A stretch of 64,000 nucleotides of DNA from Selaginella moellendorffii. Lineage: Eukaryota > Plantae > Lycopodiophyta. Position numbers and translations under genes: made by a program. The notes under the pieces were generated by a model. The model had not been told where the DNA came from, did no database searches, and was given only the letters and a program-made list of their open reading frames with translations. Of this stretch, positions 54,920-63,091 are shown in pieces (the stretch's first letter is position 1; each line of letters starts with the position of its first letter). The stretch covers positions 424,684 through 488,683 of the forward strand of contig NW_003314340.1 in the NCBI RefSeq assembly GCF_000143415.4. Reading direction: 5' to 3'.

Positions 54920-57890
54920 TGTTACATTTGGTATTAGAGGAATTGTCTCAACGATTCCTATCCAACTTTTGTCAGATTTTCTAACTCAAGTTGCATATGC
55001 AGAGACTTTTTTAGTAGATCCAAAGCAACTTGTGTAGGATTAATTGGATTGCACCATTCAGTAAGAATGTTGTAAGCATGTTTAATTACTAATAGAGGCA
55101 TGCATGTAGTTACTAAGATGGTGAAAAGGAATTGTGTTGATGATGCTAAAACCTCTAGAGGGGCGAATCAAAAGGAGGAAACTCCTGTTAGAGATGCTGC
55201 AAAAGAGGTTGAGGCTAAGTCAGAAGAGGAACAGTCAGATGTTGCAACACTACAGCATACGGCTCAAGAAGTTGAGATCAAGAATTTGCGAAGGGAAGTT
55301 CGCAAATTGAAGAAAGAGAACAAAAAACGGAAGAAAGAAGCTGAGGCAGCTAAACTAGCAAAACCTAAGCAATTGAACTCCTCTTCAAGTTTGAAGACGA
55401 TATAGTTCTACAACTGGCCCTAGTTGCATGAGTTTCAAAGTTCAAGCCTCCGAAACCACCCAATTTCAGAAGCATGCAAGACTATAAAGTTTTGGAAGAT
55501 TAGGTCTATGATATGGAAAACTATTTCATAGCAATATAAATGATCTTACGAAAGTTGCATGTGTGCATCCTTTCTTACTGATCATATGAAAACTTGGTGG
55601 TGCCAGGTGTGTGCTGAAAAAGGGTAGACTAGAAGTTAGACCAAGATGCAGTCTTGTATCCATAAGGAATACTTACCAGATGATCTTGTTTGAGACTTCT
55701 TGGAGAGTTGCGGCGGTTAAAGTAGCGAGGGGACCTTATGCATTATGTTAATGCGTTTGCTTAGAAGCGCATTATGATTGCAAATATGAGTGATAAAGAT
55801 GCTCAAAGTTATTTCCTAGAAGGTTTGAGTTCACTTTCTCGTAATGAAATTTTGAAGTTTAAGCCGAAAACGTACCTAGAGTGTAAGAAGGTAGCACAAC
55901 AAATTGTCTTTAGTCACTCACCTATAGAACAATATCAGCAGCCGTATGCTAGTACCTTGGACAAGAATAAGAATTCTAGGAATAAACAAGGTGATCAAAA
56001 ACAGGGGGTGGAAGGAAGGTTCTGCCTTGGAGGCTCACAAACAATGGTTATCAAAAGTGGTGGTGGTTGTCGACCACCAACAGCTTCTTCTAGTCCTAAG
56101 CTTTTTATTCCTTCTTCTGGTGGGTATAAGCAATAGCAACTTATAAAATCTGCTCCTAGTGGAATGGGTATTGTGGGTCATTGCTTCCATTGTGGAGAGT
56201 CAAGACATAGGTCCTTAGAATGTCCTAACAAGCATAAGACAAGGTTTCATATTAATGTCATAAGGGAAGACAGTGGTAGTGAAGCTGAAAGGGTTGACGA
56301 GTTGGTCAATGCAAACTATGAGGAAGAGGAGGTAAGTTACTTTCGTTGCTTTCCTCAAGTTTTTCTCACAGTCAATGCAAATTTGTTGATGTATTTGGTA
56401 GGTTTTGTCTGCGGACACTGAATCTGAGTGATGATTGATATGGGAGCTATACACAATGTGATATCTGAAGTCTTAGTTAAGTTGTTAGGATTGAATGCTG
56501 AGCAAATGTTGCCTATACAATTCTGGTTTGCAGAAGGTGGGCAAGTAGCTAGAAAATTTATGAGTGACGTTCTAATAAAAATATCCAAATGGAAAGAAAG
56601 AGTGGAAACAAATATATTAAAGGGATTCACTTACTAATGATTTACCATTTTGGCATTTAATATTGCTTTGACAGTTTTCTTTATTTTGTGGGGATGGATC
56701 TTAATGATTATTTATGGTTGTTGATGCCTTTGATATTTATTTTATAGTTTCTCCACACCTACCATGATTCTCCCATTCTAGACGGGTATATAGAACATCA
56801 TTGTGTGACCAAAAAGTTGTGTAGGTCTTTCTATTGGCCGGAAATGTGACATGATATTATTTTGTATATGCATAGCTGTGTTTGGTGTTAAATTTGTAAT
56901 ACTCCCCCTCATATTGCGGAAGGACGATTAGAGTTAATTGTAATTTCTAATCCATTTGAGTTGGTGGTGTTTGATATGGTGGGGCCTTTTCCATGATTGC
57001 TATTAGCAATAAGTATGTCATTATTTCTTTTAACTACTTGACTTGTTGGGTGGAATTCAATGCTCTTGCTAGCATGTTCGCAATTGCTATTAGATACTTC
57101 TTCCTCAATTTCAATATTCCTGTTTCAAGTGGATTATTTCAGATAATGATCTTACATTTATGGTTGAGGCATTTCACATTTTGATGTCTCAGTTGAGGAT
57201 ATACCACACTTTCACAAGTGTTTATCATCCGTAGTTAAACAGTTTGGTGGAACAGCTCATTTGAATTTTCAAAGGGATGATTGTTAAATATGTAAACTTT
57301 TAGTATTTGGATTAGGATAATTATTTGCCATATCTTTGGGATACATATATTAGAGAGGAGTAAAGTTTTGTTGGTGTTTCACTATATAAACTCTTATATA
57401 GTCATAATTCAATACTACCAACAAAATTGGGTTTATCTTCATGATTGCTACGAACTACTGATGCTAAATCATGGAATTAGTATTTGATGATCATTCTTCC
57501 ATTTGTCCGAATAGAGTCTACTAAACACCTAAGCTATGTACAAGTGGGACAACAACAATATTTTAACTCCCATCATCATCCACCTGTGGAGTACAAAATA
57601 GATGACTTAGTATTAGCTTATCTTCCAAATCTTACGATACATAGTTTATCTAAGGGGTTCCTTGCTCAATGAAAAAGATTGTATTACGTATTGTGGCAAG
57701 TTGGAATATAAATTTATAAGGTTTAATATGACATCCAATAAGCCAATCCTCTAGAAATTATGCATGTGCAATAGATAAGACACTTCATTCAAAGGGATTA
57801 GGAACAATTAGCACCACTTACAGATCCATTGATGCCTCACTTTAATGTTTCTTTAAATCCCGGCCCATCCACAAAAGAATCCTAATGGGA
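54920..57890 (+). mobile_element. Degenerate Ty3/gypsy LTR retrotransposon (gag-protease-integrase, RT/RNase H deleted)
   Basis: ..TTACA followed by PBS-like TGGTATTAGAG (54929); Zn knuckle CFHCGESRHRSLEC; protease IDMGAIHN; integrase remnants FYWPEM, PFELVVFDMVGP and YHP. No 3' LTR seen. Confidence 0.88.
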
Positions 57891-58654
57891 TATCCAAATG
57901 TACAATTACAATGCTGTATATTAATATTAGCATAATGGGATTTTGGTAGCTATTGGATTGGTTTCAATATGAACCACTTGCTCTTGTATATATATTTTAT
58001 TTTCATATTCCATGTCTATATTCCATGCATTCACAATATTTTATAATAAATATATATTTTTAATTTATTGATTTGGTGGATCTTCATTCATGTCATTCAT
58101 AAAGAAATCATTACAAAGAAAAAAAAGACCAAGATCTAGATGCTCTCTCATCTTAAACAATTACTTCTATCTAATTAAAAAATTTATGGTTTTTTAATTT
58201 CAGCTTAAATTATTTTTGTTACATATGACTAATATATATTTAAAAATATCTTCCTTATATAAATGAAATAATGCTTGTATTTCTAAATAGCATATAGATA
58301 GATAAAGGTCATCCACTAACTCCATGCTGGAATGCCACCAAATCACATTAGTACTGTGTGGTAGCAACCATTCTGGTTTTCTCCTTTTCATTTTGAGTGA
58401 GGAAGAGCAACAACTTAGCTCCGAGTTTTCCAGAGGGTTATTCAAAGTGATGCACGTTGAAACCTGCTTGCCAGTGGAGAGAACTTCGAGTGTCAAGAAA
58501 GAGGCTCTTCAGCTTAATGCCAACTTGCCGAGGTTTTCCTCCTGCAATCCCGAATAACACTCATCGCAGAAAAAAGAAAACAAAGAACGTACCAGCTCGA
58601 TTATCCAGCTTTTCATGCTCTGCTTTGACGGCAGCTACAATCGTGCTCGCTGCC

Positions 58655-60312
58655 TTACAGTAATAGGATGACCAGTAACACAACGACCAGTTCTCTGGGA
58701 TTACTTAGCACGGACGCTCCCAAAGATACCGCTGCTGCACAGAAACAAGTTAAATCCTCGAGAATATGTTTCTTGTGACGAACTTACACAAGCGGCAGGG
58801 AATGCTGACGAGCTTTCCAGCGAGGGGCTCAGAAGCGTTGAGAGCCGGATTCACCATCTGGATGTCCGAGATGATCGTCGAGCACTTGACAGCAATCGAT
58901 GGCAGCGTATCACCATCCACGGCCTTGTAGGCAACTCCACAGGGTCCACAGCCAACGTCCTCGTCGTGGCAAGGAATGCTAAGAACGTCTCCAAACGCTA
59001 CGTCGGCGAGCTTGATGTTGGTGGCTTCCTGGATACCTTTGACGCTCACGCCACAAACCCTCGCGACCGTGGCTAGATCGACTGCCACCAGAGGCGCTAC
59101 AGTAGATCCACAGATGGAGCAGCTTCTCAGTGGAGCGGGAGAGTCCTCGCAGGGGATTGCCAAGCTCTGACCCGGGTAGATCACTCCACTCTCCGGTATG
59201 CCGTTCGCATAGGAGATCAAGGCCGGTGTCACGTTGCACAGCTTGGCTACATCGAAAACGCTCGAGCTGTTCTTCACGACGATGGTGGTATCACAAAGGT
59301 GGCGGCTGCATTTGATCCCCAAGGTTGTCCGCTGCTTGCATGGGATCGTCAAACGCTGGCCGGGCTGGAGATCGTCCAAGTCAGTGGAAGGATTGCTGGC
59401 CTGGAGATCGATGAAGCCAACTCGGCATTTTGCTGCGACGTGTCTCCGGCTCTCGTGAAGAATAGTGTAGGAATTCCCGCAAGGCCCACAGCTCGCGGTG
59501 GAGTTGCAAGGAATTCGCAGCTTCTGGCCTTGAATCATGGTGGAGTTGGAGCTGAGATGGAGGCCTGGATTCGCCAACGAGAGCTCTTGGATCGAAGTTC
59601 CACAGTCCCTGGCAACTTGGTTGAGAGATTCTCCGTTCGTGGTGGCCGTGTACTCGATCCCACAGGCTCCACAGCCAGTGAGGGCGATGGTGGCGTTGTC
59701 TGCCTCGCAAGGGATGCGGATGAGCTGCCCAGGGTAGACGTTCTCGAAATCGATGTCCCGGTTTGCCATCTCCAGCTCCGCGAGATCCATCCCGCAAGAG
59801 TGGGCGATGTCAAAGAGGATGTCCTGTTCCTTGATCACGTAGGAAGCCCCACAGGTGCCACAGTGCGCCGGATCACTGTTGCGGCAAGGAATTCGTAGCG
59901 GCAGGCCCGTGAGATTCGCGGTGGAGTTGATGCCCGGATTGGCGTCGGCCGCGTCGCGTAGCGAGATCTTGCAATATGCCGCGACCGATTCCAGCGTCTC
60001 GCCAATGCTGGCGGTGTAGTTCGTGCCGCAAGCTCCACAGGTCGCATTGGCGATCAGCGGCGCCTCAACGATCGGCATCCCGGATGGATCAAGGAGACTG
60101 TCGAGACCATCGCGACCTAATATTTCGGGAGCTCTCGTCGTAGTGATCGCAAGAAGAGAAGAACGATCGATTAGCATACCTGATAAGAATGCGGCATGGC
60201 CAGAGCCGCTCCAGATGAAGAGCAGTAGTCCTAGCAGCAGCAATGACGAAGAACGCGCGTTTCTTGAATCATCGCCATGGAGAATCTGGAAGAACAGCGA
60301 AATATCGTCCAT
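58655..60312 (-). CDS. Secreted, probably GPI-anchored protein with seven tandem Cys-rich LysM domains (intron 58735-58787)
   Basis: Hydrophobic N-terminal signal; seven repeats of CxxC-xxY...IAxxC...ANP...GQxLxIPC; spliced last exon SAVSLGASVLSNPRELVVVLLVILLL*. Confidence 0.88.
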
Positions 60313-60408
60313 CGATCGCGGCTAGCTGGAGAAGAACCTGTGACGGCGAGAATGCGGCATCGGTGCTGTGGTAGCGCCGAGCCGATCGAGAGATCGCTCG
60401 GTCGCTCG

Positions 60409-60411
<3 letters not shown>

Positions 60412-60456
<45 letters not shown>
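60412..60456. repeat. (GA)n microsatellite
   Basis: About 22 perfect GA units upstream of the LysM gene. Confidence 0.98.
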
Positions 60457-60459
<3 letters not shown>

Positions 60460-60953
60460 TGGCAAAAACACAAGAACAAACAGTGATCGCGAGCAGTCGG
60501 ATGGACATTCGGGAAGGAACCAAAAGATTCGTTTTGTTCCGGAATGGGACAGCAGATAAGGCCATCGCCTGGAGATTCCTTCCCGGAATTTTAACGCTTT
60601 CTCGCTTCGTGCCACGAGAGAGGAACCACTTTAATTTATTAATGCTCTTTGTTTGGTGAATCTGTTTGGCTAGGTAATGGCGGCTCAAGATGTGTGGAGT
60701 CGCCGATTTCCAGGGGACTAGGAGGAGCTCCATCTTCTTCTCCTCCTCCTCTTCCTCCTCTTCCTCCTCGCGATCGCGATGCTTCTTGGCGGCCATCCGA
60801 GGCGCCGCGGATAGATCGATCGATCGATCGATCGCGCGCCTCCAAGCTGTTCTTATTGGGAATTTCGCGCAGATGAGAGCGCTGGAGCTAGATTCAAGCT
60901 AGAAGCTGCCGCGGCAGCAGCTATTAGGGTAAGGATCCCCCTATGAGGCAAGC

Positions 60954-63091
60954 ATGGGAATTTCTTTCGGCTGTTCTGCCTCGGGGGAGAGGTTAGTCTC
61001 CGCGGCTCGCGATGGCGACCTCGAGGAAGCGCAAGCACTGCTCCAATGCAATCCCCGGCTTGCGAAGTACTCCACTTTTGGTGCCAGGAACTCGCCGCTA
61101 CACTTTGCGGCAATGCAGGGTCACAATGAGGTTCGTTTCTTTCGCCAATTTATATTCTCATGTTGGGTCGGGATTTTGCTCCTTTTCTCTCGATTTAGAT
61201 CGTAACTTTGCTGCTGGAGCATGGTGTTGATGTCGATACCAGGAAATATTGCGGCCAGGTAGATTTTTTCCTTTGTTTTTTCTTGTATCTAATCTTCATT
61301 CCTTTCGATCTTTGTGGTTTTTGATGAATGGAGTAGACCGCATTGATGCAATCATGTCGGCATGGTCACTGGGAGGTTGTCCAGACATTGATTCTCTACA
61401 ATGCAAACGTAAGTGTTACTTTGCTTCCTCCACTGAATTAAATGGCGTGATTCTTCTCTCGATCTTGCTTGCCAGGTTAACAAAGGGGACTACCTTAACG
61501 GGTTGACGGCACTCCATTTTGCCGCACTCAATGGCCATGCACGATGCTTGAGGCTTTTGGTCGCGGACTACGTCCCAAGTGCTCCAAGCTTTTGGGGTCC
61601 ACGAAGAAATCTGTCCGTGCCAGACCAGGGCCCTGATTGTGTAAGCGAAGAGACGACGTCTTTGAGAAGGTACTGCCTAAAGTTTCTCTTTTTTTTTTTG
61701 CCTCGTACTGCTTTAAAACGAATCTCTTGGGTGTGTTGCTAGTTCTCTTTACAAGCTTATCAACAAGACTGCTGACGGAGGAGTAACAGGTCTTCATATG
61801 GCTTCCTTGAAGGGGCACGCAGAGTGTGTGCATCTGTTACTGGACTTGGGAGCCGACGTCTCGGCACTTACGTTTCAGTATGATACGACCGTCGACATGA
61901 TAGGTGAGTCTTTCCTCATTAAAATTTGAGTGTTTAAACTCTTTTGCTTCTCTCAGGTGCGGGAAGCAGTCCTTTGCACTATGCAGCTTGTGGAGGGAGC
62001 ATACAATGTTGTCAGGTTTGCTATAGCGTGTTTATGTAGCTCACGCGACTTTTGTTTCTGGCAGATGTTGTTAGCGAGAGGTGCTAACCATCTGGCAATA
62101 AATTGCAACGGGTACTCAAAGATAAGTTGGATTTGGATAGACGAATACTGATACAGCTTCCGCAGGTGGATTCCACAACAGGTTGCTCAGGTCTGGGGCC
62201 GGCATTGGCTAGATGGATTGCTTGCACCGCGCTCGCAATGTCCCGTGCAGCCACTTGGATTGTCCCCGTTCCTGACTTCGCCTCTAATGAGCATCATACA
62301 GATTGCAAGGTAAGAAGGTTTCAAACCTCGTTTCCACCTGACAAGTGTCTCTCCAGAGAATGCGGCTTGGGTGACATGAGCATTCTAGCGTCTGGAATGG
62401 ACTCCTGTGCCGTGTGTCTAGAGAAAATTTGCACAGTTGCTGCAGAAGGTCGGTTGGGTGATTTTACTGAGCAGCCTGACGTATCTTCCCATTTCTTACA
62501 GGATGTGGACACGAACTTTGTACAAGATGTGCTCTCTATCTCTGCTCGAACGGCACGAGCATGTCCGATCCAGCGGGAGCTGTTCCGTGTCCGCTATGCC
62601 GGCAAGGCATCGTCTCCTTCAGAAAGCTCCCTTCGGCTTCGCCTATCAAAGACCTGACGAGATCGTCGGCACTGGGCCTCTGTACAACGTGCACGGTGGA
62701 CGAGCCTGAAGCGCTATTTCCATCGGAGTTCTCCTGCAGGGCGGACAAGAGAAGCAGAGTTTTGCCGCTCTCCCCAGTCGGGAGGAGCGTTACGTGCACG
62801 GGATTCTCGACTATGAACCTCCCTTGCGGTAAATATGATCCAGCTCTTGCTACTCCAGACCAGGCGGAGGCTCAAGAAACCCGAGATCACCATCCGGAGT
62901 GGTCACTAGAGGGAGGATCTCACGAAGAAGCTCAAATTCCAGCTTCAGCTCCAGCGCCAGATCGAGCTACAACTCCTCGCTCCTTGTCCGAGTCGGCTCT
63001 GCGATCGAAATCGCCCAAGAGAGGCTGGCTCCAGGATTTTGTAGCGTGGAAGCAAAAGCACAATTGCTCCTCCAAGCCCACCTCGAGCTAG
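60954..63091 (+). CDS. Ankyrin-repeat RING-HC E3 ligase, XBAT32/33-like
   Basis: [22 protein letters not shown], ankyrin repeats and [30 protein letters not shown]. Confidence 0.93.

Follow-up and report, generated by a model that had tools for sequence, protein, structure and literature searches.

To our knowledge, the perception of chitin, peptidoglycan (PGN) and symbiotic signals by plants is today attributed entirely to ectodomains with three LysM modules, those of LYK, LYR and LYM proteins. The LYM/LYP proteins, such as OsCEBiP and AtLYM1/2/3, combine a secretory signal and a LysM ectodomain with a separately encoded C-terminal signal of the glycosylphosphatidylinositol (GPI) type; they have no kinase and are universal in angiosperms. 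In all plant LysM-RLK/Ps, CxC pairs between the LysMs pack the three modules together (Buendia et al. 2018), and the LYP clades with GPI anchors have a tail of 149-193 amino acids (PMC2728734). Other described systems are the soluble LysM effectors of fungi, enzyme-less and cysteine-stabilised, such as Ecp6, with three LysMs, and Trichoderma Tal6, described with seven; the LysMs of green-lineage proteins that their depositors named chitinases (PrChi-A, 4pxv; EaChiA, 5bum; Volvox, 5k2l); and bacterial wall-binders with long tandem arrays, such as Enterococcus AtlA, with six LysMs, often fused to hydrolases, for which polymer binding is modelled to improve with repeat number. Zhang et al. 2009 (PMC2728734) mentioned, once, a single plant protein that exceeds three LysM motifs: SELMODRAFT_416289 of Selaginella moellendorffii, counted as having four, a name that we did not find in the supplementary files of that paper. 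Here we analyse a window of 64,000 nucleotides (nt) of S. moellendorffii DNA (assembly GCF_000143415.4, contig NW_003314340.1, positions 424,684 to 488,683 of the forward strand), which carries on its minus strand, at window positions 58655-60312, an allele of this gene. Its product has seven LysM repeats, each with four cysteines of its own, and has relatives across non-flowering plants. A sequence-only reading had already proposed a GPI-type surface protein with seven LysMs that would form a distinct class of chitin or PGN receptor or decoy.

Seven LysM repeats with four cysteines each

The Pfam LysM model (PF01476, CBM50; cut-off 20.9 bits) matched the product of the long open reading frame (ORF) at 58750-60312, minus strand, with 113 bits (E 5e-33), and five stretches passed individually. 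LysM was the sole Pfam family above its cut-off, both here and in four scanned relatives; neither a kinase family nor a glycoside-hydrolase match appeared in these scans, and the ORF stops 28 amino acids (aa) past the last LysM, in agreement with the proposal that the protein lacks kinase and enzyme domains.

The protein contains seven 'IPC' motifs, and division at these produced seven units of 56-67 aa; the tandem repeats described by the sequence-only reading are all present. Each repeat holds four of the 28 cysteines, aligned in the same columns: two in a C-x2-C that precedes strand 1, a third where helix 1 ends and the last in the terminal PC. The repeats are 17-47% identical to each other, indicating old duplications, neither recent copies nor a chance pattern.

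When the repeats were scored singly, repeats 2 (59707-59883, 32.1 bits), 3 (59506-59706, 25.0 bits) and 5 (59149-59337, 25.2 bits) exceeded the PF01476 cut-off, repeats 1 (59884-60057, 14.9 bits), 4 (59338-59505, 19.0 bits) and 7 (58795-58968, 17.1 bits) reached 15-19 bits, and repeat 6 (58969-59148), the most divergent, had no match. Repeat 5 is a C-x4-C variant that forms its own clade in the repeat tree described below (Shimodaira-Hasegawa-like approximate likelihood ratio test, SH-aLRT, 98), and repeat 7 keeps the classic GDTL..IA motif and aligns to the LysM of the Volvox chitinase 5k2l. Repeats 5 and 6 had been considered degenerate. This does not apply to repeat 5, which passes the cut-off alone; for repeat 6 the lack of a Pfam match agrees with the description, but its predicted structure superposes on LysM domains (see below). 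Moreover, units 5 and 6 are conserved at 36-37% between species and units 1 and 3 at 35-38%, indicating that the former are maintained variants and not decaying copies.

A transcribed gene with three introns

We mapped RNA over 57800-61000, using the raw reads of one stranded RNA-seq run and transcript contigs from three other studies. Transcript coverage extended from approximately 58332 to 60387 in one direction only, which, for a stranded library of the usual design, fits a minus-strand RNA. The RNA of the four studies supports strand-specific expression and each of the three introns; the seven-LysM gene is real and expressed.

The coding part of exon 1 (60180-60312) contains the start codon and, as judged from sequence and hydropathy, a signal-like peptide, directly followed by intron 1 (60117-60179; 63 nt, phase 1, in frame). 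Five reads and one contig show this intron spliced, and a contig from another run retains it. Exon 2 (58788-60116) encodes a short linker and all seven LysM repeats. Intron 2 (58735-58787; 53 nt, phase 1, GT..AG), from which the sequence-only reading had deduced a small additional exon, was removed in nine reads and two contigs that join 58734 to 58788, while a NAGNAG alternative acceptor at 58732, used by four reads and one contig, creates a 56-nt form that drops one Ala. The coding part of exon 3 (58655-58734) comprises the GPI-type C-terminal signal and the stop codon TAA (58655-58657). Contig and read coverage places the 3' untranslated region (UTR) at 58332-58654, interrupted by intron 3 (58542-58592; 51 nt, GT..AG). 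The earlier gene model, with two exons, had overlooked intron 1 and also missed the intron in the 3'UTR; with intron 1 spliced, the main product is 513 aa long instead of 534.

An odd 66-nt skip with 13 letters between (joint 58525/58592) was resolved as the 51-nt GT..AG intron plus a 2-nt allelic indel. Intron 3 starts 62 nt 3' of the stop codon, and an intron spaced that far after the stop can mark transcripts for nonsense-mediated decay in many eukaryotes.

The nearest database protein is SELMODRAFT_416289, with 97% identity, and the studied stretch is probably the other haplotype of the same locus. Most RNA reads, and all the long contigs, carry the other allele, the studied one accounting for about 1 in 4-5 raw reads. 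A comparison made from read variants (sites 58669-60244) showed 13 non-synonymous and 10 synonymous codon differences between alleles, for a ratio of non-synonymous to synonymous rates (dN/dS) of approximately 0.45. None of these changes hits a cysteine, and both alleles are transcribed with an intact frame.

The public model for SELMODRAFT_416289 (533 aa) is wrong at both ends, each of which is contradicted by RNA reads. It begins at an internal Met (region 60075-60116) and so is without the signal peptide; at the other end, it uses a donor overlapping the stop codon (58655-58660) to splice into the 3'UTR, so that 76 further residues follow the hydrophobic tail. We rejected this C-terminal extension because no read uses the donor that it requires and the studied allele has stops in that frame.

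Putative signals at the protein ends

The N-terminus contains two arginines, a Leu-rich core whose best 10-aa hydropathy value is 3.35 at residue 24, and SGSGHA followed by A, with small residues at -3 and -1. This is the textbook layout of a signal peptide, which would be cleaved at that point, and the N-termini of the relatives are also hydrophobic.

After the last cysteine there are 28 residues, with a G-A-S cluster of small residues, the polar spacer VLSNPRE, of 7 residues, and a hydrophobic stretch of 11 before the stop. Eleven such residues at the very end of a protein are not able to cross a membrane. The arrangement corresponds to a GPI-attachment signal, as had been proposed for the mini-exon, and it suggests that the mature protein may be GPI-anchored. 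The signal-like character recurs in the family: 10 of 13 models have a hydrophobic end, 28-73 aa past the last cysteine and usually after a small-residue cluster, although the tails show no sequence similarity among each other. The maintenance of such properties without sequence conservation is as expected of GPI and other targeting signals.

The Selaginella protein contains 10 N-glycosylation sequons, and the arrays of the family contain 7-14 each. A role with plastid peptidoglycan, hinted at by the non-angiosperm range of the family, is unlikely in view of the secretory-type N-terminus, the 28 cysteines, the 10 sequons and the GPI-type tail.

Distribution and age of the family

We searched exhaustively 1.84 billion protein representatives clustered at 50% identity, obtaining 2056 LysM-containing matches. 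Besides the Selaginella entry, only seven representatives among the matches listed were colinear with the array, with 37-45% identity and E values of 1e-60 to 1e-104; six of them span the whole array, and one fragment from Psilotum spans repeats 3-7. Family members are encoded by two genes of Diphasiastrum complanatum; by Mp7g16540 (MARPO_0123s0036) of Marchantia polymorpha; by at least four paralogues of Cryptomeria japonica with consecutive locus numbers on one chromosome; by a partial seven-type transcript and a four-repeat paralogue of Psilotum nudum; and by Gb_31558 (full length) and Gb_22877 (partial) of Ginkgo biloba. The longer Cryptomeria models have an extra N-terminal repeat and 9-12 C-x2-C motifs, versus seven elsewhere. 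Two further members derive from transcript assemblies, which the tree puts with Psilotum (P0004) and loosely with Selaginella (P0007); the contig carrying the latter, a divergent member, also contains, at positions 280-1687, upstream ORFs with WWE, RING and Deltex C-terminal domains. A second, shorter lineage, composed of Psilotum P0019 and Ginkgo P0078, stands apart from the seven-repeat genes with support of 99/99; the protein from Psilotum comprises four repeats that keep the cysteine scheme, between a signal-like N-terminus and a hydrophobic C-terminus.

A family profile scored its members at 467 bits or more and all other proteins at 327 bits or less. C-x2-C was restricted to members; the non-members found by the profile were multi-LysM proteins of Oscillospiraceae, which are also the nearest non-plant sequence matches, and of other Bacillota.

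In the family alignment, almost all the cysteine columns are invariant, and different species have repeat-specific signatures in common, such as 'AAKCRVG' in unit 4, 'CSxCSP' in unit 5, 'CSICGSS' in unit 6 and 'AVKC' in unit 7. The four cysteines were invariant in 54 of 54 single repeats from eight aligned proteins. In the tree of these 54 repeats, grouping was by position and not by species, with six label changes for seven groups, the minimum possible; shuffling the labels required a mean of 36.6 changes, and none of 200 shuffles had as few as six. This clustering by position indicates that the sevenfold array is older than the split between liverworts and vascular plants. Repeats 5 and 6 (SH-aLRT 90) and repeats 2 and 4 (SH-aLRT 96) were sisters in the tree, hinting at how the internal duplications that built the array succeeded one another.

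In Marchantia, the gene follows the same three-exon plan, with a signal-peptide exon, a single exon for the LysM array and a mini-exon for the tail, and its two introns, both of phase 1, are at the same two places as introns 1 and 2 of Selaginella. From these sequence comparisons we conclude that the protein belongs to an ancient family, mostly with a seven-module plan, of liverworts, lycophytes, ferns and gymnosperms. There is good indication, from a clustered library and annotated proteomes rather than from genome-level searches, that angiosperms, mosses and algae do not have it.

Predicted fold and disulfides

An AlphaFold2 (AF2) model of the 442-residue array, built with a 9-sequence alignment, predicted seven beta-alpha-alpha-beta units, including one for repeat 1, which scores below the Pfam cut-off alone. 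Repeat 6 was modelled separately using the 54-repeat alignment, with a predicted local distance difference test (pLDDT) of 72. This model matched the LysM of a Thermus NlpC/P60 protein (4uz2) with a Foldseek probability of 0.99 and a template modelling score (TM) of 0.70, and VIA-align superposed the two with a Z of 7.1 and a root-mean-square deviation of 1.1 A over 47 residues. Most of its top 30 structural matches were LysM domains; besides 4uz2, the best ones comprised SleL, YkuD, MltD, CHIP13, Ecp6, CERK1 and the LysMs of the Volvox and Pteris chitinases. A search of the ESM Atlas returned generic bacterial LysM clusters only, all below 0.9. By prediction, then, the repeats adopt the beta-alpha-alpha-beta fold of LysM.

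In this fold, strand 1 begins at the same end of the module where helix 1 and strand 2 terminate. The geometry suggests that the four cysteines most likely sit at the base of the module, opposite the glycan groove, and form two disulfides within it. Since the cysteine count is exactly four in the first and last modules too, we judged disulfides between neighbouring repeats unlikely. A zinc-binding or redox CxxC, suggested by several CGPC motifs and weak zinc-ribbon noise in Pfam, appears less likely for a protein that is predicted to be routed to the endoplasmic reticulum (ER) and N-glycosylated.

Comparison with known LysM systems

The Selaginella protein resembles the LYM/LYP proteins in its general layout, and both are plausible cell-surface binders of polymers containing N-acetylglucosamine (GlcNAc). 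However, LYM/LYP proteins have three LysMs packed by CxC disulfides, whereas here there are seven, as in most full-length relatives (the Cryptomeria models having more), each with four cysteines of its own; the linkers carry PC and then C-x2-C, and none contains CxC. The Pfam models of LYK/LYP type (PF23446, PF23472, PF23473, PF23577 and PF23457) all scored below their cut-offs, and the family profile matched CEBiP only marginally (E 1e-4). The stalk is also very short in Selaginella, with 28 aa, and the family, in contrast to the LYMs, is absent from the angiosperm data searched. By these sequence tests, the family, which has neither the three LysMs nor the CxC pairs that define those groups, is separate from LYM/LYP and from LYK/LYR. 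The sequence-only reading was therefore correct in proposing a distinct class, although the protein is not a one-off and its relatives are widespread in non-flowering plants.

All matches of the family profile to solved structures were weak: after Ecp6 (E 1e-11), the best one, came LytE (9e-9), the ectodomain of a LysM receptor kinase (2.5e-5), an Equisetum chitinase LysM (7e-5), CEBiP and CERK1 (9e-4). The fungal effectors share with the Selaginella protein an enzyme-less, cysteine-stabilised multi-LysM design, but they are soluble and have other cysteine patterns, while the protein described here is encoded by a plant gene with conserved plant introns and a signal of membrane-anchor type. 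The chitinase LysMs are likewise from the green lineage, with a cysteine just before strand 1 and a terminal 'PC', and repeats 2 and 7 of Selaginella align to them end to end; they differ in having one cysteine at each end of the aligned part (as seen for 5k2l) instead of four per module, and in being, by the depositors' names, parts of chitinases, as opposed to seven LysM copies and no catalytic domain here. The bacterial multi-LysM proteins, similar in the length of their arrays, have at most two cysteines per module, no C-x2-C and no eukaryotic signals or introns.

Four LysM receptor homologues are listed in the Marchantia LysM study, and Mp7g16540 is not among them. Searches by locus names and for plant multi-LysM proteins, which did not extend to subscription journals, found no functional study of the seven-LysM family.

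Flanking features

Upstream of the coding region, the transcribed 5' leader, covered by contigs to 60387, contains a 12-codon upstream ORF on the minus strand (60322-60360), with its ATG at 60360. A (CT)n microsatellite of approximately 80 nt (60388-60466) lies immediately upstream of the end of the transcript contigs. Beyond it is a divergently transcribed neighbour on the plus strand (60582-61205; start at approximately 60954), well expressed in the raw-read run, whose product has ankyrin repeats (Ank_3, 23 bits) and, at the N-terminus, MGxxxGC, a motif resembling an acylation site.

Discussion

Taken together, we consider it probable that the gene encodes a secreted, GPI-anchored surface protein with seven LysMs that binds GlcNAc polymers and belongs to an old family of non-flowering plants. 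The functional part of this reading is much less firm than the structural part, which comprises a real gene, seven LysMs, the secretory route and a conserved family. In the mechanism that we propose, the signal in exon 1 would direct the protein to the ER, where the array would be heavily N-glycosylated at its 10 sequons and two disulfides would lock each module, leaving the glycan groove free. The C-terminal signal would then be exchanged for a GPI anchor, tethering the array on the outer face of the plasma membrane as seven binding modules in a row, connected by short linkers of approximately 6 to 13 residues. Such a chain might bind long GlcNAc-containing polymers, such as chitin or peptidoglycan, in a multivalent manner, with an avidity like that of bacterial tandem LysMs. 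As there is no kinase, the ligand could be passed to LysM receptor kinases, or the polymer could be captured, agglutinated or shielded without signalling.

More tentatively, and as a serious possibility rather than the outcome that we expect, the family may represent a further ancestral class of land-plant LysM proteins beside LYK, LYR, LYM/LYP, LysMe and LysMn. This class would be GPI-anchored, with seven two-disulfide LysMs, and would have been fixed before the split between liverworts and vascular plants and lost later in angiosperms, and apparently in mosses, its members acting as sensors or traps of polymeric chitin or peptidoglycan.

Several points weigh against the proposal of an anchored polymer binder or limit its scope. 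With just 11 residues, the hydrophobic tail of Selaginella is on the short side for a GPI signal. Confidence in the AF2 model of the whole array is low (pLDDT 58; predicted TM, pTM, 0.28), especially in the linkers, and the model does not allow the packing of the modules to be read; the repeat 6 model is biased towards a LysM fold, because its alignment also contained the six remaining repeats. The absence of the family from angiosperms, mosses and algae refers to the best 150 matches in the library clustered at 50% identity and to one close-relative search. Finally, glycan binding does not hold for some LysM modules.

One alternative is a non-immune role, in which the same protein, at the same location, would bind the plant's own GlcNAc glycans, such as N-glycan cores and arabinogalactan-protein or wall fragments, or would organise the wall or plasmodesmata, where AtLYM2 acts. 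The array is strictly conserved by position over more than 400 million years and the alleles are under moderate purifying selection, a pattern that suits fast-evolving immune receptors no better than it does housekeeping or developmental proteins. Furthermore, MpLYK1 and MpLYR already explain the known responses of Marchantia to chitin and PGN, and MpLYP is dispensable for the PGN-induced burst of reactive oxygen species (Marchantia LysM study). Nevertheless, the characterised plant LysM ectodomains named in that study and in Buendia et al. 2018 all bind microbial GlcNAc polymers, no endogenous ligand is known, and the tandem cluster of Cryptomeria, with at least four paralogues of variable repeat number, is more typical of defence genes; we therefore judge a non-immune role unlikely, though deserving of attention. 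The shortness of the tail would also fit a soluble lectin or decoy of the apoplast or wall, whose hydrophobic end would be removed or serve as a transient ER anchor instead of a GPI signal, and which would act as fungal multi-LysM effectors do in binding chitin in soluble form. Three relatives have models without a hydrophobic end, but these look like gene models missing the mini-exon; the tail is on its own conserved mini-exon in Selaginella and Marchantia, and the small cluster, spacer and hydrophobic end occur in 10 of 13 models despite the lack of sequence conservation, making a soluble protein, in our estimate, quite unlikely.

An expanded member of the LYM/LYP (CEBiP-type) family would likewise have the predicted signal peptide, LysMs, GPI-type tail and absence of a kinase, and the family profile does match CEBiP and CERK1 weakly. 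We find this origin very improbable given the seven LysMs instead of three, the lack of CxC linkers, the LYK/LYP Pfam models below cut-off and the tail of 28 aa versus 149-193 aa in GPI-anchored LYP clades (PMC2728734), and also because Marchantia and Selaginella possess canonical LYP and LYK genes in addition. Practically no credence can be given to an artefact, be it a pseudogene, a contaminant or a recent transfer from fungi or bacteria. Fungal Ecp6 is indeed the best match among solved structures by sequence, and Oscillospiraceae contain the nearest non-plant proteins, but these bacterial matches lack C-x2-C; the gene is expressed strand-specifically in several studies, its three GT..AG introns are spliced, two alleles are transcribed with an intact frame, and the liverwort relative shares its intron positions. 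These observations refute the recent-transfer and artefact versions, whereas a transfer before the origin of land plants is possible.

Two features of the family account for its having been missed by catalogues: domain scans detect only 2-5 of its LysMs, and the public Selaginella model is without both targeting signals. The result is a separately built seven-module LysM surface protein, with its own cysteine scheme, that liverworts, lycophytes, ferns and gymnosperms have retained for over 400 million years and that has a genetically tractable relative in Marchantia, Mp7g16540. If it binds microbial wall polymers, it would be an added component of immunity or symbiosis in non-flowering plants and a receptor class lost towards the angiosperms; flowering plants would then do the job of such a polymer sensor or trap with three-LysM receptors only. 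If it binds another ligand, it would represent a new use of LysM in plants.

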